From sequence record OR228459.1: DNA of 64,000 bases. One strand, given 5' to 3'. How positions within the stretch are numbered: the first letter of the stretch is position 1; every line of letters begins with the position of its first letter. Shown in pieces: positions 1 through 64,000 of this stretch. Below the pieces are notes generated by a model. That model had not been told where the DNA came from. It saw only the letters and a list, made by a program, of their open reading frames with translations, and made no database searches. The position numbers and the translations under genes are program-made.

Positions 1-1
1 G

Positions 2-163
2 ACTTTATATGATATGGTTAAATTCAATAAATTATTTGACATGCAAGAAGAATACGAAAAAGAAAATGTAATATATTGGATGTTAGTAATTACCTTTGGT
101 AATGGATTTGATTTGGAATATTTTGATGAAGGTATTCTATGCAATTCTCGTGCAGAGGTATAA
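2..163 (+). CDS. 3' end of hypothetical protein (truncated by window edge)
   Basis: Open frame from base 2 to TAA at 161-163, abutting the next start. Confidence 0.4.
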   Translation, partial: TLYDMVKFNKLFDMQEEYEKENVIYWMLVITFGNGFDLEYFDEGILCNSRAEV

Positions 164-164
164 T

Positions 165-1097
165 ATGATTACTAAAGATGATTTTTATGAATTTCTGAAA
201 GCGTTTTATAATAAGTTCAGGTCAGCGGGTGAATATTTCAATGTTCACCCATATAATGAATTTCAAAGAAAAGAAAAGGAATATCATAACTTATGTGATG
301 AATTGGGATTTTATGCTCGTGTTAGTTATAACACCTCCCCTCATGCACACAACATATATGGAATGTACGGAATTGATTTTCGTGATTTAATAACATTAGG
401 GTATATTCAAAATAAAGAATATTATTTAGAAATTCGCAATGATGAAGAAAATCCAACTTACTTAACACCAGACGACAGTACTTTTGAAAAGATAGCTAAA
501 GCATTTATTTATGGTCAAGGAAAATTCACTATTCTTCCAGATGATGTTATTACAATTGGTGATGTGTCTTTAACAGTTTTTGAAATCCATAAAGCAATTG
601 AAGAATATTCAGTACCACATCGTCTTAAAAAAATAGCAATCGATGATTTGTATGTTTTCCCATCAAAGGGTGACGATTACTCCTTTGGGGTTGGGGAACG
701 TTACACGGAAGAATATTGTGATATGGTAGAAGATATTGATACACGTTTATCACCTTATTTCTTTTCTGCTGATGGAATAGTGAATGCTGATATTTCTCCT
801 GAACATCAACGGTACTCATGGGATACATTCAAAGATAAAATAGTTGACGATATTACTGATATGGATGCCGTTTGGATTTGTAAAACAAAACCAGATGTTC
901 AATTTAATGTTAACATTGATACTTTAAAAAACTTGATTTCTTCTTTAGTAAAATCTAAAAATCCAGTAGCAGGATTATTAATGATACGTGTATTGACACA
1001 AAACAAAATCACTATAAATTACACTGATGTTCCAGAATTCAAAGTATTTGTGGAACAACATGGTCAAATAATGCGTGAATTGAGAACAATGCACTAA
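165..1097 (+). CDS. hypothetical protein
   Basis: Track ORF 96..1097; start moved to ATG 165 behind GAGG; no family recognised. Confidence 0.75.
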   Translation: MITKDDFYEFLKAFYNKFRSAGEYFNVHPYNEFQRKEKEYHNLCDELGFYARVSYNTSPHAHNIYGMYGIDFRDLITLGYIQNKEYYLEIRNDEENPTYLTPDDSTFEKIAKAFIYGQGKFTILPDDVITIGDVSLTVFEIHKAIEEYSVPHRLKKIAIDDLYVFPSKGDDYSFGVGERYTEEYCDMVEDIDTRLSPYFFSADGIVNADISPEHQRYSWDTFKDKIVDDITDMDAVWICKTKPDVQFNVNIDTLKNLISSLVKSKNPVAGLLMIRVLTQNKITINYTDVPEFKVFVEQHGQIMRELRTMH

Positions 1098-1139
1098 TAT
1101 ATGGGAAGCAATGCTTCCCATTTTCTTTAAGAGAATTTT

Positions 1140-1550
1140 ATGAATTTAGAAAAAACATTAAAATACATTGATGATAATTTTGAAAAACTGTATTCAGAAA
1201 AAAGTAAATCAAACACTAGAATTGATATTGAAAACAGTTTTATGGGTATTATTTTTGATTGGGATTTTTCTACTAAAGATACAGTACTGAAACTTGAATG
1301 GTTTCCGCATCAATATAAGTATTCTATTATCATTGAACTTTATAGTGAGACCGAATTTATATTAAACACATGGAATTCTAGAAGTTATTTGTGGTATGAA
1401 GATTTTATTATAGATTTTGATATTGAACGTGGTTATTTTGATTGTTTAGATACTGTATATCCTATGGCATCTAACTTCAAATTTAAGTACTTAAAAATAC
1501 TGAAAAGTATTTCTGTGAAATACATGATTAAGAAGGGTATAAACAAATGA
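1140..1550 (+). CDS. hypothetical protein
   Basis: Track ORF in tandem operon. Confidence 0.7.
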   Translation: MNLEKTLKYIDDNFEKLYSEKSKSNTRIDIENSFMGIIFDWDFSTKDTVLKLEWFPHQYKYSIIIELYSETEFILNTWNSRSYLWYEDFIIDFDIERGYFDCLDTVYPMASNFKFKYLKILKSISVKYMIKKGINK

Positions 1551-1557
1551 GGTGAAT

Positions 1558-1800
1558 ATGAAAACCGATAAAGCTATTGAAAAGATGCGTCGTAATAAGC
1601 GTAATTGGACTATCCCTAAACTGAAAGTAATCGCCGCACGTTGTGGTATTTCGTGCGTGTCGAATGGCAGTACTCATCACGTTTTCAGGTTAGAGGGTGT
1701 TGTAGAACATTTGTCAATTCCATTCAATGGTAAGGACATTCACCCTGATTATATAACTAAATTTCTACGCCTAATAGATAAGGCAACAGGAGAGAAGTAA
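1558..1800 (+). CDS. HicA-like mRNA interferase (dsRBD fold), no adjacent HicB
   Basis: NGSTHHVFR...LSIPFNGKDIHPDYITKFL matches the HicA pattern GSH-x-x-F...IP...KD(I/L)xxxY; ~80 aa, basic; SD GAGG before ATG 1558. Confidence 0.65.
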   Translation: MKTDKAIEKMRRNKRNWTIPKLKVIAARCGISCVSNGSTHHVFRLEGVVEHLSIPFNGKDIHPDYITKFLRLIDKATGEK

Positions 1801-40373: not shown

Positions 40374-40383
40374 GATTGTCTCC

Positions 40384-47517: not shown

Positions 47518-47519
47518 TA

Positions 47520-51050: not shown

Positions 51051-51099
51051 CCAATAAAAGGCCGCTACGTGCGGCCTATCGCGTTCTAGAGGGTATATT

Positions 51100-51521: not shown

Positions 51522-51580
51522 AAGCCGGAGAAACGGCGTGACCCATAGGGTGCGAAGAAGTAATCAGTACTTGAGAATGA
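51522..51580 (+). ncRNA. candidate small RNA, family copy 4
   Basis: TTGACA(51487)-17-GATAAT; GCCG-GAGAAA-CGGC then ACCCATAGGGTGCG. Confidence 0.5.
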
Positions 51581-51584
51581 TAAT

Positions 51585-51636
51585 CATTTACAACACTAGA
51601 CAGATTTATGCACCCGATGGGTTAGATTGTTTTCAT
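51585..51636 (-). ncRNA. candidate small RNA, family copy 5
   Basis: TTGACA(51671)-17-TATTAT; CATGAAAACAATCTAACCCATCGGGTGCATAAATCTGTC. Confidence 0.55.
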
Positions 51637-51764
51637 GCATATATAATATCAAAGTACTGTTATAGTGTCAAGCATTTTTATTTGATAATTATTTTAAAAA
51701 AAGTCTTGCATTACTTTCTGAATAACGTATAATACTTACATCAACCACTGAGAGGAAAGAAACA

Positions 51765-52136
51765 ATGTCTATTAAGCGTATTGTATTTGGTCGCGGTGCA
51801 AGTGAAGAAGTAGTACCTGTTGAACTGATCGCGATGTTAAATGAAATGATTCGCCGTGGTGATATTAATTTTAGTCCTGATGTAATGCCTTATGCGATTT
51901 CGTATGAGGTGCGTAAAAGTCCTAAGTACTGGAAGATTGACCGTGTAGAATTGGACAAAGAAACCGGAGAGATTCGCGAGTTTGGGCGTAGTTCTGTTGG
52001 TGCTGTAGATTTTGAAGGGAACGTGTTTAAATCTGCCAGCTATAAAGCCGTTGCTAAGGGTATCCGTGGAAACATCTTTGTTAACAATGGTTTTAGTGCA
52101 ATTACTGGTGACGGATATATTCGTTATTTAAATTAA
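51765..52136 (+). CDS. conserved-looking phage hypothetical protein
   Basis: KYWKI..GAVDFEGNVFKSASYKAVAKGIRGNI pattern; own promoter. Confidence 0.8.
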   Translation: MSIKRIVFGRGASEEVVPVELIAMLNEMIRRGDINFSPDVMPYAISYEVRKSPKYWKIDRVELDKETGEIREFGRSSVGAVDFEGNVFKSASYKAVAKGIRGNIFVNNGFSAITGDGYIRYLN

Positions 52137-52223
52137 AAAGTACTTGCAAAGTAATCTGATTAGCGTATAATGTTTTACATAGAGAGGGGAAATAGTTTCC
52201 CCTCCATATTAAGGAAAAGTATC

Positions 52224-52460
52224 ATGGCACAGAAAATCACTCGCGATAACGTAGAATTTTACATTGATATCCTGAATACTAAACTTGAAAAGATGGGTGC
52301 TCCACTACGTTACAAAATGATCCCTGTTGCTGGTGGTTATGAGTTGCAAAAGTACAAGGGTGATATTCAGGTTGATTATTGTGTATCTGGTCAAAAACTC
52401 CGTGAAGTTTATGAGATTGTACGTTTTGCAGCTAACATGATTTCGGATAACGTGAAGTAA
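52224..52460 (+). CDS. hypothetical protein
   Basis: Family A cassette; start trimmed. Confidence 0.75.
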   Translation: MAQKITRDNVEFYIDILNTKLEKMGAPLRYKMIPVAGGYELQKYKGDIQVDYCVSGQKLREVYEIVRFAANMISDNVK

Positions 52461-52540
52461 TTATTATCAAAAAGTACTATTGACAGAAACATGATAGTAC
52501 TTTATAATACTTACATCAATTAAGCAAAGAGGAAAACAAA

Positions 52541-52846
52541 ATGCAAATGTCTAACCTGTATGTAGCTCACATCACTATGCGTCATGGTGAATATGAAACA
52601 CTGGTTAAACGTCTGATTATTGCTAAGAGTTTAGCAGAGGCAGAATTATACGCCTATGAAGAAGGGATGGCAACATTTGACGGTAGCGAATTAGAAGATA
52701 AATCCAGCTATCAAGAAGCGGATCAACCTCATACGTGGTATTTCTCAGGCGGGGATTGGTGCGTTACTCTTAATGCAGTTACATGGATTGAGGATCGCGA
52801 AACAGCTAAAGTAATTGCTAAATCTGATTTACTGTCTTATCTGTAA
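52541..52846 (+). CDS. hypothetical protein
   Basis: Own promoter, SD GAGG. Confidence 0.8.
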   Translation: MQMSNLYVAHITMRHGEYETLVKRLIIAKSLAEAELYAYEEGMATFDGSELEDKSSYQEADQPHTWYFSGGDWCVTLNAVTWIEDRETAKVIAKSDLLSYL

Positions 52847-52913
52847 AAGTACTTGACAACCTTTCGGGGGTAGGATATACTATCCCCATCAATTAAGCAA
52901 AGAGAGAAACAAA

Positions 52914-53324
52914 ATGTTTAAAATTACTAGCGTAGAAAAAAGCGGCGATTCCATGATTGTAAGTGCTTTCTGGAATGATGCTTGTCAAGTATCTATTAGC
53001 TTTAATCAAATGGGCGTAGTACAATCCTGTACTTTCGCAGAGGATACCAAAGAGCGAGCACAATTAGAAGATCATGCACGTTCGGTAATTAAATTCAATA
53101 TTCCTATTGAAATGGAACCTAATATCATTTATACTGATGATCAGGTCGAGCAAATGAAACGTTGGTATGAATCTTTGATTAAAGCGGAAAAGGTCATTGC
53201 AGAAATGGATCAATGTATCGTTGAAGCTGATTGGTTATCTGATATGTTCGGGCAAACATCCGGTAGCATTATTGATGCCCTGTTTAATGTTCGTGCGGCG
53301 TTAGATCCTCGCATCAATCAATAA
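52914..53324 (+). CDS. hypothetical protein
   Basis: Own promoter TTGACA-17-TATACT. Confidence 0.8.
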   Translation: MFKITSVEKSGDSMIVSAFWNDACQVSISFNQMGVVQSCTFAEDTKERAQLEDHARSVIKFNIPIEMEPNIIYTDDQVEQMKRWYESLIKAEKVIAEMDQCIVEADWLSDMFGQTSGSIIDALFNVRAALDPRINQ

Positions 53325-53326
53325 AG

Positions 53327-53365
53327 AAAAAAGGGGTTGACTTCGGTCGCCCCTTTTGTTATTAT
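53327..53365 (+). promoter_or_regulatory. terminator/-35 hybrid element, copy 8
   Basis: AAGGGGTTGAC-TTCG-GTCGCCCCTTTT..TATTAT. Confidence 0.8.
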
Positions 53366-53371
53366 ATAGTC

Positions 53372-53435
53372 ATTGGCAGATAAGCTACTAACCCATAGGG
53401 TGCAATAGTCTGTCTGTAGTATTTTAGTACTGAAA
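53372..53435 (+). ncRNA. candidate small RNA, family copy 6
   Basis: TGGC-AGATAA-GCTA then ACCCATAGGGTGCAATAGTCTGTC. Confidence 0.5.
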
Positions 53436-53501
53436 AATAGTTCTTGCTTTTATGTGCTGGTGGTGTATAATACTTGTATTGAAACAAACGAGGGTTCAAT
53501 T

Positions 53502-53663
53502 ATGGAACATGATTTTGATTCATCGGATTTTGAGTTGGCTAGTGATTATGCATGGCATCTTATGCAAAAAGAAGGTAAATCCGAAACTGATGCATTAATG
53601 CAGGCGGCTAACCAATATAATATTAATTACGTATCATTACAAGGATATTGGGATCAAGCATAA
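53502..53663 (+). CDS. small acidic hypothetical protein
   Basis: Track ORF trimmed behind GAGG. Confidence 0.65.
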   Translation: MEHDFDSSDFELASDYAWHLMQKEGKSETDALMQAANQYNINYVSLQGYWDQA

Positions 53664-53747
53664 AAAGTACTTGCATTACATATTCAGTACTGTATAATGG
53701 TTTGCATAGGGAAAAACAACTTCCCCCACTAATTAAGGAAATGAATT

Positions 53748-54212
53748 ATGAATAGCATCCAGTTCGTAGAAGCCATTGAAAAAGAATTCCTGTCAGTATT
53801 TCCTAACGGTTTCTTTATTGCCCGACCTTTACCGTTGGGCGGTGATGTAGGGATCACTATGGGACTGACTCGCGAACAGGCCGATTGTCCTCATAATATC
53901 CGTGATAATGATCGTATGCGTATGACCTTCGCGATCCACGGTATGAAGTTTGGGGATAGTGAAGATTATAACGACAAGTTAATTATGGAACCGTACTATT
54001 CAGCGATTAGCACGATTCCACGCAAGCCATACTACGCTATGGGACACGATAAGATCAAGACACGCAAAACCACTAACACGCCGGAAAAATTGATTGTAAC
54101 GCTTTCTAAGTACATTAAAACCGCAGGGCAGCAAGTAAAAGAGCTAGCAGAAGTAAACGAGATTTATCAGCAGGAACAGATTAAACCTCAGTACTTAGAA
54201 ATTAACGTGTAA
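53748..54212 (+). CDS. hypothetical protein
   Basis: Family A cassette. Confidence 0.8.
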   Translation: MNSIQFVEAIEKEFLSVFPNGFFIARPLPLGGDVGITMGLTREQADCPHNIRDNDRMRMTFAIHGMKFGDSEDYNDKLIMEPYYSAISTIPRKPYYAMGHDKIKTRKTTNTPEKLIVTLSKYIKTAGQQVKELAEVNEIYQQEQIKPQYLEINV

Positions 54213-54276
54213 TTATTATCAAAAGTACTTTACAAATACAGTAGAGTACTTTATAATACTTACATCAATTAAGCAA
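54210..54276 (+). repeat. 67-bp promoter repeat (family B), copy 1
   Basis: TAATTATTATCAAAAGTACTTTACAAATAYAGTAGAGTACTTTATAATACTTACATCAAYTAAGCAA. Confidence 0.9.
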
Positions 54277-54289
54277 AGAGGGTTACAAA

Positions 54290-54514
54290 ATGGCGGCTAA
54301 AACTTTTGAACAGTTAAAATGGGTTGCTGGTCAAATCACTGATGATCTGATGTATTCCCGAATGAATGAAGCAGTACTAAAAACCGTTTTCAATCGCCGG
54401 ACTAAATCTACTGAAATGGCTACCTTATGCGGCCTTGTATGTGCTAGTGCAATGGAACGTAAAATTAATACAGAAGTAATTGAGCGTTATTTACGCAACG
54501 TACATACTGAGTAA
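54290..54514 (+). CDS. hypothetical protein
   Basis: Between family B repeats. Confidence 0.75.
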   Translation: MAAKTFEQLKWVAGQITDDLMYSRMNEAVLKTVFNRRTKSTEMATLCGLVCASAMERKINTEVIERYLRNVHTE

Positions 54515-54578
54515 TTATTATCAAAAGTACTTTACAAATATAGTAGAGTACTTTATAATACTTACATCAATTAAGCAA
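54512..54578 (+). repeat. 67-bp promoter repeat (family B), copy 2
   Basis: One mismatch versus copy 1. Confidence 0.9.
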
Positions 54579-54591
54579 CGGGATTTATACT

Positions 54592-54822
54592 ATGGATAAT
54601 CGTGAAATCATTGCTCAAGTACTGACACGTATTTTAATGTCAACTCGACTTTCACAGGTACGCAACATCACAGCCGCACATGAAAATACATGGCGTGAAG
54701 CCTTAAATGGTAGTAATGCAAGTCAGCTAGCGGCGGATAATAAGCTGAAAGAAGTTATCAAGTCTGCTATGGCAGAATTGAATGATGATGCAGTAAATTA
54801 TGTTTTAAATTCTTTCAAATAG
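54592..54822 (+). CDS. hypothetical protein
   Basis: Track ORF after family B repeat. Confidence 0.75.
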   Translation: MDNREIIAQVLTRILMSTRLSQVRNITAAHENTWREALNGSNASQLAADNKLKEVIKSAMAELNDDAVNYVLNSFK

Positions 54823-54902
54823 TAATTGCATTACTTCTGAAATAACGTATAATGGTTTGCATAGGGGGAAACAACTTCCCCCACTAATTAAGGAAATATA
54901 AT

Positions 54903-55211
54903 ATGATTGCTAACGTTCAAGCCAACTTTGAAAACCAATTCATCAATGAAATATTGCGACTGGATGATGGGGTCGCACGTATTAACTACGGTTTTAACTC
55001 CGGTGGTTATGAAAGTAACGTGTACTTTTATACTGCTGACGGTGGTACACTGGCAATCGATACGGTAATTGTTGAAATACAAAAAGTAAACTTCAATGAT
55101 GAAAATGATCCACAGTGGTATATCATCGGCTATGACGTGAACTATGAAGATCAAGATCTTTATGACTCACATACAGGCCAGCAAATCATTCCCGCTTATG
55201 GGGATGAATAA
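54903..55211 (+). CDS. conserved-looking phage hypothetical protein
   Basis: DGGTL..WYIIGYDVNYEDQDLYDSHTG..IPAYG pattern. Confidence 0.8.
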   Translation: MIANVQANFENQFINEILRLDDGVARINYGFNSGGYESNVYFYTADGGTLAIDTVIVEIQKVNFNDENDPQWYIIGYDVNYEDQDLYDSHTGQQIIPAYGDE

Positions 55212-55214
55212 TAA

Positions 55215-55306
55215 CACAAAGGGGAGCTAACACTCCCCTGTTTATTTGTACAGTACTAAATCATATAGATACAATTCCGCACCCTGTGGGTTAGATTGTT
55301 TTCATG
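55215..55306 (-). ncRNA. candidate small RNA, family copy 7
   Basis: TTGACA(55341)-17-TATAAT; CATGAAAACAATCTAACCCACAGGGTGCGGAATTGTATC; terminator hairpin near 55220-55240. Confidence 0.55.
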
Positions 55307-55426
55307 ACAATAATTATACTTAAAATCGGGTGACGTGTCAAGCATTTATTTTATTAAAAACGTACTTGCAATTTTTCAGTACTGTAGTATAATACTTGTA
55401 TTGAAACGAGATAAGGGAAACACAAA

Positions 55427-55966
55427 ATGATTACACAAATCTATCACGGCAGCACCCGTTTTGATACTGCTGGTGGATATAAAGGCGGCAAGCCTAACAG
55501 CTTTCAATATGGTGTAGGTCTGTATTGTACTAATGCTTACTTGTGGGCTGAGAAGTACGGTCGAAGTGTTTATGTATTAGATGTGGAACTCAAACCAGAA
55601 CACCACGCCGACAATGTAGAAATTACAATTGAAAACTTGCAATATTGGGTTAACTGCTATTGCTCGCAAAAAGTAGCAAAGATCTTTAAAAAGGAATTCA
55701 GCCAGCGTAAAACTATGACTGCAAATCGCTTTGAATTGTGGTTGTACTGGAATGTAAGACGCTTTAAACCAATCGCCGTACAATTAGCTGCTTTCTTTGC
55801 TGCACAAGGTGTAACCCATAATAGCGAGGTTGGCAATTATGGTGGTAAACTCATTCGTATCTATGACTTTGATATTATCAAAGGTTACACAAAGGATAAA
55901 GAAGTACTACAAAAGTTAAACTACAACAATACAGAATTACCTGATTATCTGAAAGAAAAAGTTTGA
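55427..55966 (+). CDS. ADP-ribosyltransferase-fold protein (H-Y type), tentative
   Basis: IYHGST...YGVGLYCT..AEKYG matches the YHGT..GxGxYxT..AxxY pattern. Confidence 0.55.
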   Translation: MITQIYHGSTRFDTAGGYKGGKPNSFQYGVGLYCTNAYLWAEKYGRSVYVLDVELKPEHHADNVEITIENLQYWVNCYCSQKVAKIFKKEFSQRKTMTANRFELWLYWNVRRFKPIAVQLAAFFAAQGVTHNSEVGNYGGKLIRIYDFDIIKGYTKDKEVLQKLNYNNTELPDYLKEKV

Positions 55967-56023
55967 CAGTACTAAGGGAGTATTATATAATACTCCCATC
56001 TTAAGAAAACAAGGAATTACAAA

Positions 56024-56248
56024 ATGTCTTTATACTCACTGGAAGTTGAACATCATAACTTTAGTACTAAAATGATTGTAAGTACTGATGCAAAAGAGAG
56101 AGAAGATCAGTACAATGAAGTTATGACATGGGCTAAAGGTTTCTATCCTGCTGGGACTATTTTAAAGGCTAAGTGGGTATCACATGAAACTAAACTTGAT
56201 TTTCATTCAGCTATTGCTGGTGGTTATGAGGGGATTAAACTGTTATGA
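56024..56248 (+). CDS. hypothetical protein
   Basis: Own promoter and SD. Confidence 0.75.
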   Translation: MSLYSLEVEHHNFSTKMIVSTDAKEREDQYNEVMTWAKGFYPAGTILKAKWVSHETKLDFHSAIAGGYEGIKLL

Positions 56249-56391
56249 AAAAAGAATTTATCTTGCGAGTACAAATGAAAGGCGGTGCACAACGTACTTT
56301 TCGTGAATGGGGTTGGTCTGCTGGTATGGCCTTTGAACAGCTTAAAAAAGATAATCCCGATGTTCAATACAAAATAGAATCAAAAGAGGCG

Positions 56392-56458
56392 TAATTATTA
56401 TCAAAAGTACTTTACAAATATAGTAGAGTACTTTATAATACTTACATCAACTAAGCAA
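56392..56458 (+). repeat. 67-bp promoter repeat (family B), copy 3
   Basis: One mismatch versus copy 2. Confidence 0.9.
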
Positions 56459-56683
56459 AGAGGATAGGAAAATGAAAGAATCTCAATACGAAGCAGTACT
56501 GGCACAGACTGGTGAAGATCTGACTACTGAGCAGTACGCTAAAATTGAAGAGATGCTTTTAGCTGGTAAATCTGTTAAAGACACTGTGAAAGCAGTTCGT
56601 AAGATGTAAAATAATTAGTCAGTACTCTTGACATTATCATAGAGTACTGCTATAATTACTTTACTTAATCAGGAGAACATACG

Positions 56684-57001
56684 ATGGCTTTACATTCAGC
56701 AATGCGAAAAACTGTTAATATCTATGCAGATAAAAACATTATGGATTGTACTCTTGGACATACTGATAATCAATATGCCATTATTGTAAAAAACCCGTTC
56801 ACTGGTGAAGATTGCATTTACAGTGGACAGTACTTAGAAAGTAATTTATTACCTGCCACAAAACGCAGTGAAATGAAAGGGTATATTACCCGGCACAGAG
56901 CAGAACGTGACATTGCAACAATCTTTTTACCCGGTCAAAATGCTCGCGTGGTAACGATGGAAGAAGCAGAGATTTTTCTTGGCAGCCGCTTTAAAGTGTA
57001 G
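56684..57001 (+). CDS. hypothetical protein
   Basis: Own promoter, SD AGGAG. Confidence 0.8.
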   Translation: MALHSAMRKTVNIYADKNIMDCTLGHTDNQYAIIVKNPFTGEDCIYSGQYLESNLLPATKRSEMKGYITRHRAERDIATIFLPGQNARVVTMEEAEIFLGSRFKV

Positions 57002-57212
57002 TATAATACTTTTATCAAATCAAGTGGAGTACTAAAAAGATGATTACACCTATTGCACCAATTCACAAGACAGTGTATAATACTTATAGTACTCCAAAGC
57101 AGCAACATATTATCGAGGAACTGAAAGAACAGAAAAAAGAAGTAAAAAGTACTGGTAACCGAATCGATATTAAAGTATAATACTTACATCAACCACAAAG
57201 AGGAATACAAAA

Positions 57213-57551
57213 ATGGCTATTACTTCTATCTTCTGCAACACCCGAAACGAAGCACGTCAGGCTAAAATCGATTTCAACGGTAAAATTGTTGACAATGGTT
57301 CTGATGCACCCAAGGGACAGCGTTGGGAAGTACAATACGAAGTAGCCCCCGTATCTGATGCCATCGCGGAACTTGCAGCAATCATGCAAGCGGAAGTACA
57401 AGACATGGCACTAGAAGAAGTGTCTCCACGTGAGATTATGGGTCTTCCACGTCCTGTAAGCAAGAATAAAAAAACCCGTGCTGTGATCATGAAAGATCGC
57501 AAAGGTAATTCAGTTACTGTACAGGTTCGTCGTCGCCGCATTACTGCCTAA
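57213..57551 (+). CDS. hypothetical protein, basic C-terminus
   Basis: SD GAGG; ends VRRRRITA. Confidence 0.8.
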   Translation: MAITSIFCNTRNEARQAKIDFNGKIVDNGSDAPKGQRWEVQYEVAPVSDAIAELAAIMQAEVQDMALEEVSPREIMGLPRPVSKNKKTRAVIMKDRKGNSVTVQVRRRRITA

Positions 57552-57591
57552 CCGAAAGGGGGAGCAATCCCCCAAACTTTTAAGAGGATTT

Positions 57592-57843
57592 ATGAAGAAG
57601 CAAGTACAACTAATTAATGGTAATTTCATGCGATTGCATTATAAACCGCAAAAGAAAATCATTGAGAAAGCTACAAAGGTAGCAAATGATTTTGTTAGTG
57701 GGACAGTTCGCCCCCGTAAACTATCTAACGGATTGTTTCAAGTACTGGATATTAGCAGAACAGAACGTATCGTAATTGATAAGGAAAAGCAAATACATTT
57801 AATGAGTCACGAAAAGTACAATGATTTTGTGAATCAGCGTTGA
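57592..57843 (+). CDS. small basic protein, possible ParE/RelE-like fold
   Basis: KATKV..PRKL..QVLDI...R(I)V..LMSHEKYN pattern recalled from phage ParE-like proteins; weak. Confidence 0.35.
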   Translation: MKKQVQLINGNFMRLHYKPQKKIIEKATKVANDFVSGTVRPRKLSNGLFQVLDISRTERIVIDKEKQIHLMSHEKYNDFVNQR

Positions 57844-57897
57844 CAGACTACCGACAACATAGTATAATACTTTCATCAACTAAACGATGGTTCTAAA

Positions 57898-58287
57898 ATG
57901 AAAAATATTGTTTCTGCTATCGCTATCGCTGTTATGTTTTCTTCAACTCCAGTTATGGCATACACTGTTAATCTGAATGAATTGACAGATTGGGGAAATC
58001 AAATGCGTGATCGCTTTGCAGTACCAGACCATATCCAGCCGCAGCAAAAACAAGGTAGTGAAATGTTATGCCGTGGGGTAATGACTAACGAGCAAACCGG
58101 ACAACAAATCCGCGAACAATTCAGTACTAGTGGTGAACGTTCGGTATCGGGTAATGATATCATCTATCATGATGAAGATGAAACCGGAAGCACTACATTG
58201 CAAATTAATGCAAAAACTGGTAAAGGCTTTATTACGATGATGGACACTGAAAAAGTTATCGTAACTGGTAATGTAGTTTGCAAATAA
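57898..58287 (+). CDS. putative exported protein
   Basis: Signal MKNIVSAIAIAVMFSSTPVMA. Confidence 0.75.
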   Translation: MKNIVSAIAIAVMFSSTPVMAYTVNLNELTDWGNQMRDRFAVPDHIQPQQKQGSEMLCRGVMTNEQTGQQIREQFSTSGERSVSGNDIIYHDEDETGSTTLQINAKTGKGFITMMDTEKVIVTGNVVCK

Positions 58288-58293
58288 AGTACT

Positions 58294-58331
58294 AAAAAGG
58301 GGTTGACTTCGGTCGGCCCTTTTGCTATTAT
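58294..58331 (+). promoter_or_regulatory. terminator/-35 hybrid element, copy 9
   Basis: AAAAGGGGTTGAC-TTCG-GTCGGCCCTTTT..TATTAT. Confidence 0.8.
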
Positions 58332-58336
58332 ATATC

Positions 58337-58385
58337 CCATAGAAACAAGTTAACCCACAGGGTGGCGTAGTCCGTCCAAAATTTA
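58337..58385 (+). ncRNA. candidate small RNA or leader, family copy 8
   Basis: CATAGAAACAAGTTAACCCACAGGGTGGCGTAGTCCGTC. Confidence 0.45.
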
Positions 58386-58400
58386 TTAAAAGTATAATAT

Positions 58401-58655
58401 ATGGAAATATGGAAAACAATCACTGATTCCCCTAATTATGAAGTAAGTAATTTAGGAAATATACGAAAAATACGTGATAATAAAGGTATGGCACAAACTA
58501 ATAGTAAACTTTCAGATGATGATATTAAATTCATCCGAGCTAATTTTAAAAAATGTGATCCTGTATATGGTGGAATACCACTAGCAAAGCGATTTGGTGT
58601 ATATAAAAGTACTATATACAAAATTGTACAAGGACGTGCATGGAAGCATATATAA
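58401..58655 (+). CDS. NUMOD4-HTH protein lacking the HNH domain (homing endonuclease remnant)
   Basis: MEIWKTI..YEVSNLGNIR joined to SKLSDDDIKFIR..LAKRFGVYKSTIYKIVQGRAWKHI. Confidence 0.7.
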   Translation: MEIWKTITDSPNYEVSNLGNIRKIRDNKGMAQTNSKLSDDDIKFIRANFKKCDPVYGGIPLAKRFGVYKSTIYKIVQGRAWKHI

Positions 58656-58692
58656 ATATATTCATAATACCATTTTATATAAGGAGTATATT

Positions 58693-59226
58693 ATGCCGGG
58701 TAAATTTCAAGATAAAAATGGTGGGTTAATTGCAGGACATAGTGATCGCTGGTCTGATGAAAACCGCCGTAAAAATAGTTTTAATGCTGGTGCTGGAAGT
58801 CGAGCTAGTCGAAATCAAGGACTAGGACAAAAAGGACTCGACAATACTAAAACAGATACCATTGTAGATACTTCTAGGATGAAACCAGAAGAAAAACTAA
58901 AGTACTTCCAATCTTTGGGATTACTTGGTCATCAAGAGAAAGGTTCTAAAGAGCCTCCAAAAGCAGCACCACAAAAACCAATGCCTACCGATAGTAAATC
59001 ACTTATTAGTACTTTACAAGATCAATGGAAAGATGCGTTTAAAGGCGATGTACGCCATTCTAAGCGACTTATTGCAGAACTTAAGGACGTTGCCCCAGCT
59101 AAGATTAAAAAAGCTCTACAAGCTGCTTACAGGGCCACACAAGAGGTTACCGCACGTGAAGACGACCCTCTAACAATCGTTGAATATATCAGTGATGCTA
59201 TTGTTCCATTTACATATGAAGATTGA
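58693..59226 (+). CDS. hypothetical late protein with KYFxxLGLL motif
   Basis: TATAAATA at 58651; SD AAGGAG; start trimmed from 58594. Confidence 0.75.
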   Translation: MPGKFQDKNGGLIAGHSDRWSDENRRKNSFNAGAGSRASRNQGLGQKGLDNTKTDTIVDTSRMKPEEKLKYFQSLGLLGHQEKGSKEPPKAAPQKPMPTDSKSLISTLQDQWKDAFKGDVRHSKRLIAELKDVAPAKIKKALQAAYRATQEVTAREDDPLTIVEYISDAIVPFTYED

Positions 59227-59229
59227 AAT

Positions 59230-59265
59230 AAAAGGTTGACATGAGTCAGCCTTTTTTGCTATCAT
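59230..59265 (+). promoter_or_regulatory. terminator/-35 hybrid element, copy 10
   Basis: AAAGGTTGAC-ATGA-GTCAGCCTTTTTT..TATCAT. Confidence 0.75.
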
Positions 59266-59292
59266 AGTCCTACACCAATAGGAGATAGTAAC

Positions 59293-59556
59293 ATGAAATA
59301 CTTACTAATCATCGCCGCATTATTCAGTACTCAAGCAATGGCAACAGATATGGTTTGTAGTGCTGATGGTTTCCAAACTGTATTCAAGGTAGATGGCAAC
59401 ACGCTTATTGACACAAACGAACACGTAGTAGCTGAAGAAATCAGTACTGGTAAGTTTATGGCACAAGATCAGTTCGGTGAAGTAGTTTATACTATTCACG
59501 GAAATAAGATTGTAATGCAATTCAGTGGCGTTATCAAAGAGTACAATTGCAAATGA
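59293..59556 (+). CDS. putative exported protein
   Basis: Signal MKYLLIIAALFSTQAMA. Confidence 0.75.
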   Translation: MKYLLIIAALFSTQAMATDMVCSADGFQTVFKVDGNTLIDTNEHVVAEEISTGKFMAQDQFGEVVYTIHGNKIVMQFSGVIKEYNCK

Positions 59557-59747
59557 TTGTACAAGTAACACTAAAAGGATTGAAGCCCGGAGAAGATGAC
59601 TACGAAACACATGTAGCCACTATTTCCGGGTTGACAATGGATGAGATTGATGGTAATATACTGTCATACATCTACGAATGGCGTAATGCAAACGGGTATT
59701 ACAAAATGAAATATATTCATAAAGAGGTAATCTCATGCGATAACTAA
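59547..59747 (+). CDS. hypothetical protein
   Basis: Track ORF. Confidence 0.65.
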   Translation: MQMIVQVTLKGLKPGEDDYETHVATISGLTMDEIDGNILSYIYEWRNANGYYKMKYIHKEVISCDN

Positions 59748-59763
59748 CACAGGAGATTACACA

Positions 59764-59979
59764 ATGCCAACTCATTCACTAGTACTTAATGGGATTCGAT
59801 TCAAAATGACTGAGGGTGCATTGCAAAGTACTAACACGCAATTAGTACTTGATAAACTCACAAAAGAACAATGTGATGGTATCCTTCGCGAAGCAAATCG
59901 CATTAAGTCAACTGTATCAAATCACCCGGTTAAGCGTCAATTACTTCAGGGGATCATTATGGGATGTTTGCGTAAATGA
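59764..59979 (+). CDS. hypothetical protein
   Basis: SD AGGAG. Confidence 0.7.
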   Translation: MPTHSLVLNGIRFKMTEGALQSTNTQLVLDKLTKEQCDGILREANRIKSTVSNHPVKRQLLQGIIMGCLRK

Positions 59980-60154
59980 TTTATCAACAAATTATTGCAG
60001 TACTGAAAACACTTGACTACGGAAATGCAATCCGTTATGCTAGTGCTAACGCCTTTGAACTCGCTCAAATGTATGAGCAAGGTAGTACCATTGATGAGCT
60101 GGTGGAGGTTTGTCTCAGTCATAAATAATCTTGTAATTATTACAGGAGATCATT

Positions 60155-60427
60155 ATGACAGACTTAAACGCAATCAAGCAATGGAGTACTATCCCATTAA
60201 ACGAACTACCGCAACTACTAAAGCAACAAGGTTTTCAATTCGTACCACGTTTTAGTACTGAAGATCATCGTATCTTCGTATCTCAAGACGGACAATATTT
60301 GATTAATATTATCCGTAATACTGGAAAAGTATACAGTACTAAAAATCAGAAATCACCTTTGCATATTTTTGGTATTCGTAATGGTGAGATCCCAAAAGGT
60401 GCAGATAAAGCATTCAGAACTGAATAA
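60155..60427 (+). CDS. hypothetical protein
   Basis: SD AGGAG. Confidence 0.75.
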   Translation: MTDLNAIKQWSTIPLNELPQLLKQQGFQFVPRFSTEDHRIFVSQDGQYLINIIRNTGKVYSTKNQKSPLHIFGIRNGEIPKGADKAFRTE

Positions 60428-60428
60428 T

Positions 60429-60468
60429 AAAAAAAGGGTTGACTTAGGTCGGCCCTTTTTGTTATTAT
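60429..60468 (+). promoter_or_regulatory. terminator/-35 hybrid element, copy 11
   Basis: AAAAAGGGTTGAC-TTAG-GTCGGCCCTTTTT..TATTAT. Confidence 0.8.
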
Positions 60469-60496
60469 ATACTTATTGAAGCGAAGGAGATAGAAC

Positions 60497-61087
60497 ATGT
60501 ACGTCACTAAAGCAGCAAAGAAACACTTAAAAGAACTTGACAAGTTACCAACTAATAAACAAATGTTAAAGTACTGTCGAGAAAATTTAACACGTTTGGG
60601 TAAGGGATCAAGTCGTGAAGTTTTTGCATTATCTGATACATTAGTAATCAAGATCGCTTTAGGTGGTGTAGGTGTAAAACAGAATGAAAATGAGATTCGT
60701 ATCTGGAATCTAGTTAGTTATTCATTTACTGGATTTAAGAGATCATTCGCTAAAGTACTGGTAAATTCATGCCACTGGAAAGAATTCTATATCGTCATGG
60801 AGCGTTTAAATACACAAACCGTGTCGCGGTCAATCTTTAATACAAGTACTGTTAGAGCGTGGCGTATGGATCGTACCGCAATGCATCCAATTGCTAAACG
60901 TATATTCAAAGATGTACAAGCCACTGATGATAATGCTTTTACTAATAACATAGCAGATATAACTCCACGAAATATGGGAACATCAAAAACAGGTGTTGTC
61001 AAGATGTTGGATTATGGTTTTAGTACTCCTATATGGAATGGACTCGCTAACGGTACATTAAAGAATAGAGAATTACTTATAAAATAG
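60497..61087 (+). CDS. protein-kinase-like fold protein
   Basis: LGKGSSREVF, VIKIA, QNENE, YIVMERL, DITPRNMG, MLDYG. Confidence 0.75.
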   Translation: MYVTKAAKKHLKELDKLPTNKQMLKYCRENLTRLGKGSSREVFALSDTLVIKIALGGVGVKQNENEIRIWNLVSYSFTGFKRSFAKVLVNSCHWKEFYIVMERLNTQTVSRSIFNTSTVRAWRMDRTAMHPIAKRIFKDVQATDDNAFTNNIADITPRNMGTSKTGVVKMLDYGFSTPIWNGLANGTLKNRELLIK

Positions 61088-61149
61088 TGCTTGACTACTT
61101 TATGCTGGTGGGATATACTTATCCCATCAACAACAAAGAGGAATACAAA

Positions 61150-61395
61150 ATGTTTAAAGTACGTAAATGGTCTGACTCTAACTCCCGCCCATATGATGTT
61201 GTTTATGTAGATGATATTCGAAACAATATCCACTATCAACCCGGCGTAGAATTTAGTACGATTGAAGGTGCTTATAAACATAAAGAAGTACTAATCAAAA
61301 GTACTGATGAAGATAGTATAGAATTTATCCGTAATCATTGGCCCACTGATGGTGCCGCTGATGAGGATAATTCAGAAGAACCAAAAATAGATTAA
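61150..61395 (+). CDS. hypothetical protein
   Basis: Own promoter TTGACT-17-TATACT; start trimmed. Confidence 0.7.
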   Translation: MFKVRKWSDSNSRPYDVVYVDDIRNNIHYQPGVEFSTIEGAYKHKEVLIKSTDEDSIEFIRNHWPTDGAADEDNSEEPKID

Positions 61396-61396
61396 T

Positions 61397-61434
61397 AAAA
61401 AGAGGTTGACTTCGGTCAGCCTTTTTTGTATTAT
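61397..61434 (+). promoter_or_regulatory. terminator/-35 hybrid element, copy 12
   Basis: AAAAGAGGTTGAC-TTCG-GTCAGCCTTTTTT..TATTAT. Confidence 0.8.
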
Positions 61435-61440
61435 ATATAT

Positions 61441-61495
61441 CAAGAAAACAGCTAACCCACAGGGTGCATAAATCCGTCTTTCAAATGTATATTTT
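61441..61495 (+). ncRNA. candidate small RNA, family copy 9
   Basis: CAAGAAAACAGCTAACCCACAGGGTGCATAAATCCGTC. Confidence 0.5.
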
Positions 61496-61627
61496 TTCAT
61501 CGAAGTACTAAAACGAATACGAAACAAATAAATTTCAAAAAGTACTTGACCACTATTACCGATTGTCGTATAATGTTTTACATCGAGAGGGGAAATGGTT
61601 CTACTCTCTAACTTAAGGAATTAAATC

Positions 61628-62149
61628 ATGATTACTACTCCAGTACGCGATATGTTTAACGTTAACCCCAACACTGGTATTGCTTATGGATACATCAACG
61701 CGAACAACGTAAACAGTGAAGTACTGAATGAAATTTTCTGCAATGGTATTGATGTAGCTCGACTTGAAGCAGATATTGACTTCGCCAAACGTTATGATTT
61801 CGTAGTACCTGATCAAAAGGAATCAGAAGATTATACTGCTTATCTTGAGCGTGTACAATCCGATATGCTTGACTTCCTTAACAATCTGGGCGATGATGTG
61901 ATGGAAGAAGTGGAAGCACATGATCGCGAATATGAAGAGTTTACAGGTCATGTACACGCCGCCACAGTAGATAAGACTACAGTACTTTATAACACTGATA
62001 ACAATACTATCTGTGTTATGGATGGCATCAATGTTGGTTTTTTCTATGCTTGCTCTCCATGCTGCCCGAATGCTGGTGATCTTGATAGTGCTGGTGGAAG
62101 TGTAGAAACTTACGATGTACCTGTAAGCTGGCGTGAACTGGATTACTAA
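61628..62149 (+). CDS. conserved-looking phage hypothetical protein
   Basis: NPNTGIAYGYI..CSPCCPNAGDLD pattern; family A cassette. Confidence 0.8.
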   Translation: MITTPVRDMFNVNPNTGIAYGYINANNVNSEVLNEIFCNGIDVARLEADIDFAKRYDFVVPDQKESEDYTAYLERVQSDMLDFLNNLGDDVMEEVEAHDREYEEFTGHVHAATVDKTTVLYNTDNNTICVMDGINVGFFYACSPCCPNAGDLDSAGGSVETYDVPVSWRELDY

Positions 62150-62480
62150 TTGACAACAACAAAGGGATAGTATATACTATCCCTAACTTAAGAAAAGAGG
62201 AAATCAAAATGGTTCACGTTGATCTTGAAGTACTGAAAAAAGTATGGTACGACATTGGCTATAAAAATATTAGCTGGACGGATAACCAGTACATCGAGCT
62301 TAAGGCACTGGATAACTGGCAGCGTAATGAAGTACTGAAAGCACACAAAAAAGGTGTAGATGATCGCTTTAACTTTCCTGTACTTTAATAGAAAAAAGTA
62401 CTTGCATAGTATTCTGATTACTGTATAATGTTTTTCATAGAGAGGGGAATGGTTCTTCTCTCTAAATTAAGGAAAACATT

Positions 62481-62663
62481 ATGACTAACAAATATCGTAC
62501 TCAGTTCTTCATGGTTGATGGTGCTCGATTAACTGCTGCTGACGTACACGAGTACTACGGAGTGAGCATTGATGATCTTCTGGTGATGCATGAAGATGAA
62601 ACACAATTCTTCCATGCTCATGGGTACGAGGTTAAAGTAACACGCTGCCCAGCATACAATTAA
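62481..62663 (+). CDS. small hypothetical protein
   Basis: Family A cassette. Confidence 0.7.
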   Translation: MTNKYRTQFFMVDGARLTAADVHEYYGVSIDDLLVMHEDETQFFHAHGYEVKVTRCPAYN

Positions 62664-62708
62664 TCATTTGGGGAGAGAGGTAATACTCTCCCATATTAAG
62701 GAACGTCC

Positions 62709-62975
62709 ATGAAACTGATTAACACACTAACGCGATTGTTTGGCACTGATAATGTTGACGATTGGAACGATGTTAACGATGAAGATAATGTGATTGATTA
62801 CATCGTTATCTACCACAACAATGATGGTGATAATGAGTGTGAGCCTGATTACTTCCTACGCCACTACGACAACGGATCATACCAGCTTAATGATCTCAGT
62901 GGCAACGTAATTCACACTGGTAATGATCTGGCAGTACTAAAGAAAGTACTAAAGAATTTACCAAAAAGTAATTGA
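62709..62975 (+). CDS. acidic hypothetical protein
   Basis: SD AAGGA. Confidence 0.75.
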   Translation: MKLINTLTRLFGTDNVDDWNDVNDEDNVIDYIVIYHNNDGDNECEPDYFLRHYDNGSYQLNDLSGNVIHTGNDLAVLKKVLKNLPKSN

Positions 62976-63005
62976 CTATAATCTGCTGGTGGAGTATTAT
63001 ATATC

Positions 63006-63065
63006 CATTGGCAGATAAGCCACTAACCCACGGGGTGCATAGATCCATCTATTGGATTTAAGTAC
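63006..63065 (+). ncRNA. candidate small RNA, family copy 10
   Basis: TTGACT(62972)-17-TATTAT; TGGC-AGATAA-GCCA then ACCCACGGGGTGCATAGATCCATC. Confidence 0.5.
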
Positions 63066-63182
63066 TAAAACCTTTTAAAAAAAGAATAAAGAAAGTACTT
63101 GCATTACTATCTCAGTACTGTATAATGTTTTACATCGAGAGGGGGAAATGGTTCTCCCTCCTAATCCAAAAGGATACGCACT

Positions 63183-63584
63183 ATGTTCACATTAAACCAT
63201 TTCTCCGATGTTGTTGCTGTTGCTAAAACCTTCGGCGTTGATGCACTTCGATACGCGATGGATAACAGCACCGTATCCGTTGGTGCATGTCACACTATCC
63301 GTGACTGCATGAAGTGGGCTGCTAACAAAGTTGTTAGTATTGATAACTTCAACGATGGTAACAATGAGTATAGCATTGATGCTGTATTCTCTACCGAGAA
63401 CGTAGCTGGTCTGTACATCACTGGCCTCGATGATATTCGTATCTCTCGTACTGGTTTCGGTTCCTTCTACGGCGATGCACGTGAAGCAATGGAGAAGGGT
63501 ATTATCAATGCCGAGCAGTTAGGCAAAGTACTAAAAGAGATTGCATTACGCAATGAAGCAGCTAAAGCCTTTGGTTTGCTGTAA
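63183..63584 (+). CDS. hypothetical protein
   Basis: Family A cassette. Confidence 0.8.
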   Translation: MFTLNHFSDVVAVAKTFGVDALRYAMDNSTVSVGACHTIRDCMKWAANKVVSIDNFNDGNNEYSIDAVFSTENVAGLYITGLDDIRISRTGFGSFYGDAREAMEKGIINAEQLGKVLKEIALRNEAAKAFGLL

Positions 63585-63648
63585 TACATAACACACTATA
63601 CAAGGCCACTGGTTAACGCTGGTGGCCTTTTACTATGGAGGTAATATC

Positions 63649-63855
63649 ATGACAACATATAGGGTAGAGGGTTGCTTAGGCGTGACTATAGGCAGCGTGA
63701 GCACCATAGATGATGCAACGGCTTTAGTACTAAAGCAAATACCTATCAGTGCTAAGACTACAGCACAGTTAGCGGGTAAGCTATCCCGTAAGGCAGTAGG
63801 TGGGAAGGTATACGTAGACTATGGCGGTACTGGCTGTACTGTATTTGTGGAATAA
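63649..63855 (+). CDS. hypothetical protein
   Basis: SD GGAGG; start trimmed. Confidence 0.65.
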   Translation: MTTYRVEGCLGVTIGSVSTIDDATALVLKQIPISAKTTAQLAGKLSRKAVGGKVYVDYGGTGCTVFVE

Positions 63856-64000
63856 GGAATTTTTACCTAAGTCAGATTTTATCTAACTCATTTTTAAAAT
63901 AAGTCAAGAAAAAAATGAGTAAGGTATTGGTTGACTTTTCTATAAAAAATATTGATTGGACTATGAAAAATTTTTACCTTAGTGAAGGCCAGTCATGCCT

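Follow-up and report, generated by a model that had tools for sequence, protein, structure and literature searches.

The iterated palindrome AGTACT in Klebsiella phage fENko-Kae01 and other RaK2-like jumbo phages

Abundance of AGTACT in genes and intergenic DNA

Why does a 360-kb Klebsiella jumbo phage, whose genome has been purged of most other restriction-type palindromes, carry the 6-bp palindrome AGTACT about nine times more often than expected? We addressed this question starting from the last 64 kb of the genome of phage fENko-Kae01 (64,000 nucleotides, identical to OR228459.1 296106-360105, hereafter the window), for which an initial annotation made from the sequence alone had claimed a strong over-representation of this word. 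The observation itself is confirmed. AGTACT occurs 248 times in the window, while dinucleotide-preserving shuffles gave 17.6 ± 4.3 copies with a maximum of 30. Exactly 25 copies lie in the first 10 kb and 36 between positions 44160 and 47980, both matching the earlier hand counts, and the earlier expectation of about one copy per 3 kb is close to the shuffle value of one per 3.6 kb. AGTACT is the top hexamer by observed/expected ratio in the window, and in the 340-kb unique genome it is the top of all 4096 hexamers as well, with 819 copies against about 96 expected (dinucleotide model, z = 74).

To exclude trivial causes, we ran the controls for codon usage, dipeptide usage and GTAC frequency that had been named beforehand as able to overturn the claim, and none of them removed the excess. 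Synonymous-codon shuffles that keep every protein gave 198 ± 11 copies against 725 observed in genes, while codon-order shuffles gave 125 ± 10. The excess occurs in all three reading frames and about half of all synonymous opportunities are used, namely 56% of Ser-Thr, 47% of X-Val-Leu and 38% of [KQE]-Tyr-[FLSYCW] opportunities. Furthermore, the amino acid sequence itself is bent toward the word, since Ser-Thr and Val-Leu dipeptides are in excess (ST 603 vs. TS 424; VL 736 vs. LV 504). A codon or dipeptide artifact is rejected on these grounds. The unit is the hexamer and not GTAC: GTAC lacking an AGTAC half-site is at expectation (571/546), one half-site gives a 2.2-fold and the full palindrome an 8.6-fold excess, a half-site halo as expected for recognition by a dimer. 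A maximal-order Markov model does "explain" the hexamer, but only because its own pentamers carry the excess. Repeat families or mobile elements inflating the count are likewise rejected, since the flanks carry almost no information and the sites outside the terminal repeat are spread like a Poisson process. Their spacing is about 450 bp with no gap above 2.9 kb, without preference for gene starts or gene ends and without helical phasing of coding sites, for which only a 3-nt periodicity was seen.

The same genome has zero copies of 24 other palindromic hexamers and of GCGC. This extreme purge suggests unmodified, restriction-exposed DNA. The AGTACT excess as a mere by-product of the purge was considered, but the magnitudes do not fit.

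Early promoters, hairpins and the genome end

The density of the word triples in the 19.7-kb terminal repeat, which harbors an array of early genes (Table 1). The initial annotation had placed AGTACT just before -35 boxes, in promoter spacers and in terminator stems. The promoter placement is confirmed: among 41 promoter-like sites in the repeat, 13 have AGTACT starting 5 nt before the -35 box, and 12 have a copy ending 1-4 nt before the -10 box. AGTACT abuts the -35 box, and a second copy often lies 20 bp downstream. The two positions correspond to about -40..-35 and -20..-14, 20-21 bp apart, and the same offsets of -5 and +15/16 from the -35 box were found in fENko-Kae01, G17 and RaK2, with a sharp 20-bp pair peak only in early regions. 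However, part of this conservation could reflect duplicated promoter cassettes. In contrast, a systematic use in terminator stems does not hold. The example given for it (39540-39556) is a genuine hairpin with AGTACT in both arms, yet none of the 25 terminator-like hairpins in the repeat uses the site, and the claim is anecdotal.

Table 1. Features carrying AGTACT in the window (positions within the 64,000-nt stretch).
Position	Strand	Feature
1..64000	.	Field of 248 AGTACT sites: 2-4 per kb in 1-44 kb (almost all inside genes) and 5-12 per kb from 44 kb on
39534..39562	.	Bidirectional terminator-like hairpin whose two 12-nt arms each contain AGTACT (39540, 39551), flanked by an A-run and a T-run
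44265..64000	+	Right copy of the 19,736-bp direct terminal repeat (early-gene array); 122 sites (6.2/kb), 11.7/kb in intergenic DNA and 4.4/kb in genes
44292..44471	.	Cluster of five AGTACT sites plus AGTAC half-sites within the first ~210 bp of the physical genome end, including a twice-repeated element, AGTACTCCATCCTAAATC...GGAGTAC, also present in the G17 leader
47822..47855	+	Two-site early promoter: AGTACT 47822-47827 overlapping the first T of the -35 box TTGACG (47827); second AGTACT 47842-47847; -10 box CATAAT 47850-47855
47963..47996	+	Example of a one-site early promoter (AAAAGTAC-TTGACA); others at 48952, 50538, 51482, 52848 and 61541
49610..49643	+	Two-site early promoter: sites 49610 and 49630; -35 TTGACA at 49615; -10 box at 49638
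52473..52508	+	Two-site early promoter: sites 52473 and 52496; -35 TTGACA at 52480; -10 TATAAT at 52503
53666..53698	+	Two-site early promoter with a TTGCAT-type -35 box: sites 53666 and 53686, followed by gTATAAT
54224..54257	+	Two-site early promoter: sites 54224 and 54245; near-identical cassettes at 54526-54559 and 56406-56439
56621..56656	+	Two-site early promoter: sites 56621 and 56643; -35 TTGACA at 56628; -10 TATAAT at 56651
63094..63126	+	Two-site early promoter: sites 63094 and 63114; TTGCAT -35 box; gTATAAT

The location within sigma-70 promoter footprints might point to a host protein as reader, such as a nucleoid protein, RNA polymerase subunits or SlmA, whose binding consensus GTGAGTACTCAC has an AGTACT core. 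However, the flanks required by SlmA are under-represented around the phage sites: G at -1 and C at +1 are disfavored, and GAGTACTC occurs 8 times against 26 expected, by which SlmA sites are rejected. In addition, the host background is poor in the word (3 sites in a 50-kb E. coli K-12 sample), and since the trait is the same in phages of Enterobacterales and of Xanthomonas, a host reader would have to be conserved across those hosts. We consider a host reader to be the least likely of the alternatives discussed here.

Distribution among relatives and turnover of sites

The trait is shared by G17 (76/12), RaK2 (88/10), GAP32 (90/12) and Xanthomonas phage XaC1 (128/17), while it is absent from Atu_ph07, PA5oct and T4. 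A scan of viral contigs found the multi-copy architecture confined to the clade, which comprises ~100 genomes and includes coliphages that grow on MG1655 such as Sharanji and slurp01. Despite this maintained density of 6-9x, individual coding sites turn over strongly: 143 of 200 aligned site columns are private to one genome, in lineages whose synonymous sites are close to saturated (four-fold-site identity ~0.5). Between fENko-Kae01 and 7t3, which belong with SE_PL, Munch and PHA46 to five near-identical genomes, substitutions are not detectably rarer inside sites (7 vs. ~9 expected), indicating that either the constraint per site is weak or this comparison is underpowered.

Such turnover without detectable per-site constraint among close relatives, together with a pressure strong enough to shift dipeptide usage, might fit a mutational or repair drive, in which a Vsr-like very-short-patch repair system or biased gene conversion would keep regenerating sites that have no function of their own, an explanation of the HIP1/CCWGG type. 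A methylase-linked mutational drive was one of the readings offered by the initial annotation, but it is not supported. All one-mismatch neighbors of AGTACT but one are mildly enriched (1.3-2.5x) rather than depleted, with the deamination products AGTATT/AATACT at 1.35x. Non-repeat intergenic DNA has a lower density than genes (1.7 vs. 2.2 per kb), the fixed promoter positions are conserved across genera, and no cytosine methyltransferase motif was found in the genome. Consequently, we regard a drive as improbable.

Candidate readers and writers of the word

The interpretation given with the initial annotation, a genome-wide site for a phage-encoded DNA-binding, protective, modifying or packaging protein that doubles as an operator of early promoters, or else the footprint of a drive, is partly supported. 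A DNA-level, genome-wide enrichment that contrasts with strong palindrome avoidance, its incorporation into early sigma-70 promoters at operator-like positions conserved in distant relatives, and the comparison with cyanobacterial HIP1 all hold. Our preferred, yet tentative, explanation is that AGTACT is a selectively maintained recognition word on the double-stranded DNA of RaK2-like jumbo phages. What the analysis shows directly is the roughly 9-fold excess in all frames and in non-coding DNA, the use of synonymous opportunities and the bent amino acid sequence, the density held while sites turn over, the Poisson-like spread outside the repeat, the two fixed promoter positions and the cluster at the physical genome end. 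In contrast, we only infer that the hexamer is read as a dyad by an as yet unidentified dimeric factor made or carried by the phage. At early promoters two dimers on the same helix face would bracket the -35 box inside the RNA polymerase footprint and act as an operator that times early transcription. The ~700 evenly sprinkled sites in genes would keep that factor concentrated on phage DNA, where the word is roughly 40-fold (genome-wide) to 100-fold (terminal repeat) denser than in the E. coli sample (2.4-6 vs. 0.06 per kb), and they would act as a self-mark for a genome that appears to have no protective base modification. However, that a single factor serves both purposes is an inference as well, and the two site classes could have different readers.

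No binding protein was found in support of this view among the proteins examined. Pfam scans of 40 window proteins, out of ~580 encoded by the genome, revealed no HTH, RHH or similar domain, but only a DksA/TraR zinc finger, a sigma-70-family factor, RCC1 repeats, HNH/NUMOD4, a BCS1-like AAA ATPase and DUFs. The sigma factor may or may not be the reader: its orthologues occur in many clade lineages but are only 29-45% identical.

A methyltransferase or topoisomerase would fit the near-absence of flank preference as well as a binding protein does. The only methyltransferase-motif gene found in the genome is ENKO_087 (record 40162-40692, outside the window), which encodes a small Dam-family N6-adenine methyltransferase (PF05869, E = 9e-29). 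Its orthologue and the neighboring cytidylyltransferase gene are conserved in the fENko group, Asteriusvirus, Alcyoneusvirus, XaC1/XbC2 and Yersinia fHe-Yen9. One might speculate that this candidate writer methylates an adenine in AGTACT, and that methylated sites would mark phage DNA, set early-promoter activity on injected versus replicated DNA, or gate cutting at the genome end, as Dam sites do at the phage P1 pac site. The weak flank preference, fitting enzyme-like 6-bp recognition, and the cluster of sites at the terminus are in line with this idea. However, characterized members of this family act on GATC or are non-specific, and a published analysis suggests that this small subfamily may methylate RNA (PMC7824862). 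Furthermore, the closest homologues outside the clade (42-46% identity), found in unrelated phages, come without AGTACT enrichment, so that the methyltransferase is not sufficient for the trait. A PDB sequence search returned no solved structure, the protein scores below the NCBIfam cut-off, and methylation alone does not explain why the site should be enriched. Our literature searches found no methylome or digest data. We consider an epigenetic mark possible but unlikely.

Still less likely, the word might be the preferred substrate site of a phage DNA enzyme. The phage encodes a topoisomerase II, a primase and several nucleases. Cleavage around a GTAC core by the T4-type type II topoisomerase would give the 4-nt stagger typical of these enzymes, while other candidates are a primase or a translocating nuclease that is tamed by the word, like Chi but orientation-free because the word is palindromic. 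The even spacing, the dyad symmetry and the almost absent flank information agree with such a site. However, it does not explain the two fixed positions in early promoters or the 20-bp pairing, T4 encodes a type II topoisomerase too but shows no enrichment, and no site preference is known for these enzymes in this clade.

A further-reaching, rather unlikely reading that our data do not rule out is that AGTACT represents a sequence-encoded "self" code of jumbo phages with unmodified DNA. A phage factor reading the word would let the phage spare its own genome while shutting down or degrading the host chromosome, and would also switch the early promoter array in the terminal repeat. This would be a functional replacement for the modified cytosine of T4 and the first highly iterated palindrome with a defined role in a virus.

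Since these phages have purged nearly every GC-containing 6-bp palindrome, a single one kept at about nine times expectation implies a benefit that outweighs the restriction risk, under a pressure held across phages of Klebsiella, E. coli, Cronobacter and Xanthomonas. The finding points to an unknown sequence-specific reader or writer in a clade where more than 80% of genes have no known function. It gives a concrete handle on early-gene control in RaK2-like jumbo phages, several of which are being considered for therapy, and makes the question of how an unmodified phage genome distinguishes itself from host DNA directly testable. It also predicts that ScaI- or RsaI-type restriction systems would be unusually potent barriers against these phages, unless the sites are protected. 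We found no prior description, and no paper in the literature collection searched links AGTACT, ScaI or RsaI to these phages.

Among described systems, HIP1 (GCGATCGC) of cyanobacteria is likewise a short palindrome many-fold over-represented genome-wide, embedded in coding sequence in all frames, shaping codon and amino acid choice and keeping its abundance across related genomes. However, AGTACT is a 6-mer in a lytic phage clade and not in a cellular genome, it lacks the neighbor depletion of a repair drive, and it has a promoter subclass of fixed geometry. With operators of phage repressors or regulators at sigma-70 promoters it shares dyad-symmetric sites at fixed positions inside the polymerase footprint, paired two helical turns apart and common to a whole class of promoters, while only 6 bp are specified with little flank information and the same word occurs ~700 times in genes. 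Dam (GATC) clusters at the P1 pac site and Dam-controlled promoters also combine a short palindrome at the packaging end and in promoters with a phage-encoded Dam-family enzyme, but there the motif is GATC, which is not 9-fold enriched genome-wide in Dam-regulated systems. Hydroxymethylcytosine of T4 as a self-mark and the first-step-transfer terminal repeat of T5 are possible functional analogies only: a way to tell phage from host DNA, and a long terminal repeat packed with strong early promoters that would enter the cell first. The mark would here be a sequence word instead of a modified base, and T4 shows neither the enrichment nor the palindrome purge. Chi, KOPS and DNA-uptake sequences are dense, dispersed words as well, read by a translocating or binding machine, far more frequent in self than in foreign DNA and conserved in density rather than position. 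Those words are asymmetric and strand-biased, whereas AGTACT is a perfect palindrome for which an orientation bias is impossible. Genuine Chi octamers are separately enriched in fENko-Kae01, so attack on DNA ends seems to matter to this phage.

AGTACT Enrichment Withstands Composition and Codon Controls

The window matches Klebsiella phage fENko-Kae01 (OR228459.1) at 100% identity. This phage is a 360,105-bp jumbo myovirus with a 19,736-bp direct terminal repeat (PMC11218385), and its close relatives at 98–99% identity are the Salmonella phages 7t3, SE_PL, Munch and PHA46. The rest of the genome was retrieved and analyzed as well. AGTACT occurs 248 times in the window, while dinucleotide-preserving shuffles gave 17.6 ± 4.3. 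The counts made by eye in the initial annotation were accurate, with 25 sites in the first 10 kb and 36 in 44160-47980, and its observation of a strong over-representation of AGTACT is confirmed and even strengthened by our analysis. In the 340,369-bp unique genome 819 sites were found against 96–115 expected, which is the largest excess of any hexamer (z = 74). The density is 1.7–2.6 per kb across the unique genome and 6.2 per kb in the terminal repeat.

To exclude an artifact of composition, we applied the controls that had been named beforehand as possible refutations. Inside genes there are 725 sites, whereas shuffling synonymous codons within each gene, with proteins kept, gave 198 ± 11 and shuffling codon order gave 125 ± 10. 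All three frames contribute to the excess: AGT-ACT encodes 56% of all 603 Ser-Thr dipeptides (15% expected), xxA-GTA-CTx is used at 47% of 559 permissive X-Val-Leu tripeptides, and xAG-TAC-Txx is used at 38% of 332 permissive [KQE]-Tyr-[FLSYCW] tripeptides. In addition, the permissive peptides are themselves in excess, with 603 ST against 443 expected (TS 424) and 736 VL against 532 expected (LV 504). Thus, protein sequence is bent toward the word. The tetramer is not the unit, since GTAC with no AGTAC half-site is at expectation (571/546), while words with one half-site are at 2.2x and the palindrome at 8.6x. The flanks carry almost no information, with only a mild preference for C or A before the site and against G before and C after it.

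This enrichment contrasts with an extreme purge of restriction-type words in the same genome. Of the 64 palindromic hexamers, 26 are absent from the window and 24 from the 340-kb unique genome, AAGCTT for example being found 0 times against ~115 expected. GCGC is absent from both window and unique genome (334 expected in the latter), and CCWGG occurs once against 224 expected. G17, RaK2, GAP32 and XaC1 share this purge, while PA5oct and Atu_ph07 do not, and T4, which has modified DNA, shows neither the purge nor the enrichment. We infer that the DNA of this phage is exposed to restriction and probably unmodified, which makes the enrichment of one palindrome more striking.

Besides AGTACT, the Chi octamer GCTGGTGG is enriched, with 24 copies on the + strand and 8 on the - strand genome-wide against ~1.5 expected each. 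In genes, 19 sense copies compare with 8.4 ± 2.1 after synonymous shuffling, and half of the + strand copies lie in the terminal repeat. An inverted Chi pair forms a hairpin ~0.5 kb from the genome end, and the same hairpin is present in the G17 leader.

Phylogenetic Spread and Two Classes of Sites

To determine how far the trait extends, we compared ~43-kb loci centered on the DNA polymerase. The results show that it belongs to the RaK2-like clade and does not depend on the host.

AGTACT and GCGC in ~43-kb loci centered on the DNA polymerase
Phage	AGTACT observed / expected	GCGC
G17 (Asteriusvirus)	76 / 12	0
RaK2 (Alcyoneusvirus)	88 / 10	0
GAP32 (Mimasvirus)	90 / 12	0
XaC1 (Xanthomonas phage, 65% polymerase identity)	128 / 17	0
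Atu_ph07 (42% polymerase identity)	1 / 5	normal
PA5oct (38% polymerase identity)	3 / 14	normal

In 26 orthologue sets aligned across five genomes, 143 of 200 site columns are private to one genome and only 5 are shared by all, while four-fold-degenerate identity is about 0.5. Where both genomes keep a permissive peptide, a site in one predicts a site in the other only moderately (0.52–0.79 against 0.27–0.54). Between fENko and 7t3 (0.95% divergence), substitutions are not detectably rarer inside sites (7 against ~9 expected), although this test has low power. What is maintained is density, not position.

The sites fall into two classes, coding sites and promoter sites. Outside the repeat they are spread like a Poisson process (CV 0.95), the largest gap of 2.9 kb being about the chance value, and they show neither a preference for gene starts or ends nor helical phasing. 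Non-repeat intergenic DNA is slightly poorer in sites than coding DNA (1.7 against 2.2 per kb). In the repeat, by contrast, intergenic density is 11.7 per kb and the placement is stereotyped, as one copy overlaps the first T of the -35 box (AAAAGTAC-TTGACA or TTGCAT), while a second often ends 1–2 nt before the -10 box, the two being 20–23 bp apart. The same two offsets occur in the early-gene arrays of G17 and RaK2, which are not alignable with fENko apart from short patches, and pooled early regions show a sharp peak at exactly 20 bp (23 pairs against about 2.5 expected). A scan of viral contigs for the exact two-site promoter found it in multiple copies only in RaK2 (and once in Serratia phage BF). 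Outside the clade it occurs only as one conserved promoter in each of two unrelated families of metagenomic viral contigs (IMG/VR contigs, loci L020-L033; GC ~0.41–0.44), which have the exact AGTACTTGACA-N9-10-AGTACT-N1-TATAAT architecture without genome-wide enrichment. These promoters may be ordinary operators for an AGTACT-reading regulator.

Furthermore, five sites plus half-sites lie within the first ~210 bp of the physical genome end and include a repeated element that is also present in the G17 leader. The initial annotation had in addition placed AGTACT systematically in terminator stems. However, while its example is a genuine one, it is not a general pattern.

Candidate Mechanisms and Proteins

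A repair-type mutational drive predicts depletion of the precursor neighbors of the word. Instead, all but one neighbor class are mildly enriched, including AGTATT/AATACT at 1.35x, and the mutational-drive reading, one of those put forward in the initial annotation, is disfavored. The palindromic symmetry, the half-site halo, the sites in untranscribed promoter DNA and the 20-bp pairing rather point to recognition of double-stranded DNA by a dimeric factor. The word is roughly 40-fold (genome-wide) to 100-fold (terminal repeat) denser in the phage than in a 50-kb E. coli sample, which has 3 sites, and it could therefore serve to distinguish phage from host DNA. Our best reading combines an operator role at early promoters with a genome-wide self-mark. 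However, it is only the anatomy of the sites that our analysis demonstrates, while the factor that would read them is inferred. The proposal of the initial annotation was supported only in part: a binding or modification site doubling as an operator is compatible with all the evidence, but remains unproven.

The only methyltransferase-like gene found is ENKO_087 (176 aa, PF05869 Dam family), which lies outside the window and is merely a candidate, with no specificity for AGTACT established. Its orthologue, next to a cytidylyltransferase gene, is conserved across the clade. However, a published analysis suggests that this small subfamily may act on RNA (PMC7824862), unrelated phages carrying its closest homologues lack the enrichment, and no solved structure exists. 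Pfam scans of 40 window proteins found no classical DNA-binding regulator. They did reveal a sigma-70-family sigma factor separate from the gp55-like late sigma, with Pfam regions 2 and 3 detected but no assignment for the C-terminal ~95 aa. Its full-length orthologues occur in many lineages of the clade, but are only 29–45% identical.

Highly iterated palindromes and dispersed recognition words are as such known, while their occurrence in this setting is unexpected. Searches of the paper library found no mention of AGTACT, ScaI or RsaI in connection with these phages, and the genome papers examined say nothing about it. The CBB paper describes RpoD-like early promoters with UP-like elements, but not this motif.

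Other Features of the Window

Besides the AGTACT sites, the early region shows further recurrent elements. About ten early transcripts start with a conserved leader, in which GnTTTGCATAG is followed by a GGGGGAAA...TTCCCCC-type hairpin of -8 to -15 kcal/mol and then by TAAGGA. This might be a 5′ stabilizer or a regulatory RNA element, and RaK2 early leaders have similar hairpins. The motif TTGAAACGA recurs just downstream of early -10 boxes and matches the TGAAACG element proposed as a divergent -35 box of a second promoter class in CBB and GAP32 (PMC5259590), so these could be nested middle promoters.

Coordinates of features in fENko-Kae01 (window positions unless stated)
Feature	Position	Strand
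Window in OR228459.1	record 296106-360105	
Direct terminal repeat	44265-64000	
BCS1-like AAA+ ATPase (hypothetical in the record)	1800-3035	+
Sigma-70-family sigma factor	11760-12728	+
HNH endonuclease (hypothetical in the record)	18007-18966	+
Block of RCC1-repeat genes	30441-43933	-
Glycine-rich protein interrupting the RCC1 block	39570-40373	
Chi octamers	44746-44769; copies at 44760, 47754, 47975, 52329, 53456, 55469, 56216, 60098, 61104, 62090, 62985, 63618 (+) and 44748, 51277 (-)	+ and -
Conserved early leaders	47028-47060, 48985-49015, 49339-49370, 50104-50135, 52172-52210, 54854-54885, 61575-61610, 62430-62465, 63127-63165	
DksA/TraR-type C4 zinc-finger protein	48693-48953	+
Motif downstream of early -10 boxes	49650-49665, 53460-53475, 55395-55410 and similar	
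NUMOD4-motif protein (HNH endonuclease in the record)	58401-58655	+

The gene for the zinc-finger protein lies in the longest stretch of the sampled 8 kb of the terminal repeat that still matches distant relatives at the nucleotide level (72–95% identity patches). The RCC1 block comprises about 11 paralogous genes of 373–399 aa encoding RCC1-repeat beta-propeller proteins. The phAPEC6 paper notes 11 such genes and speculates that they organize DNA around a capsid inner body.
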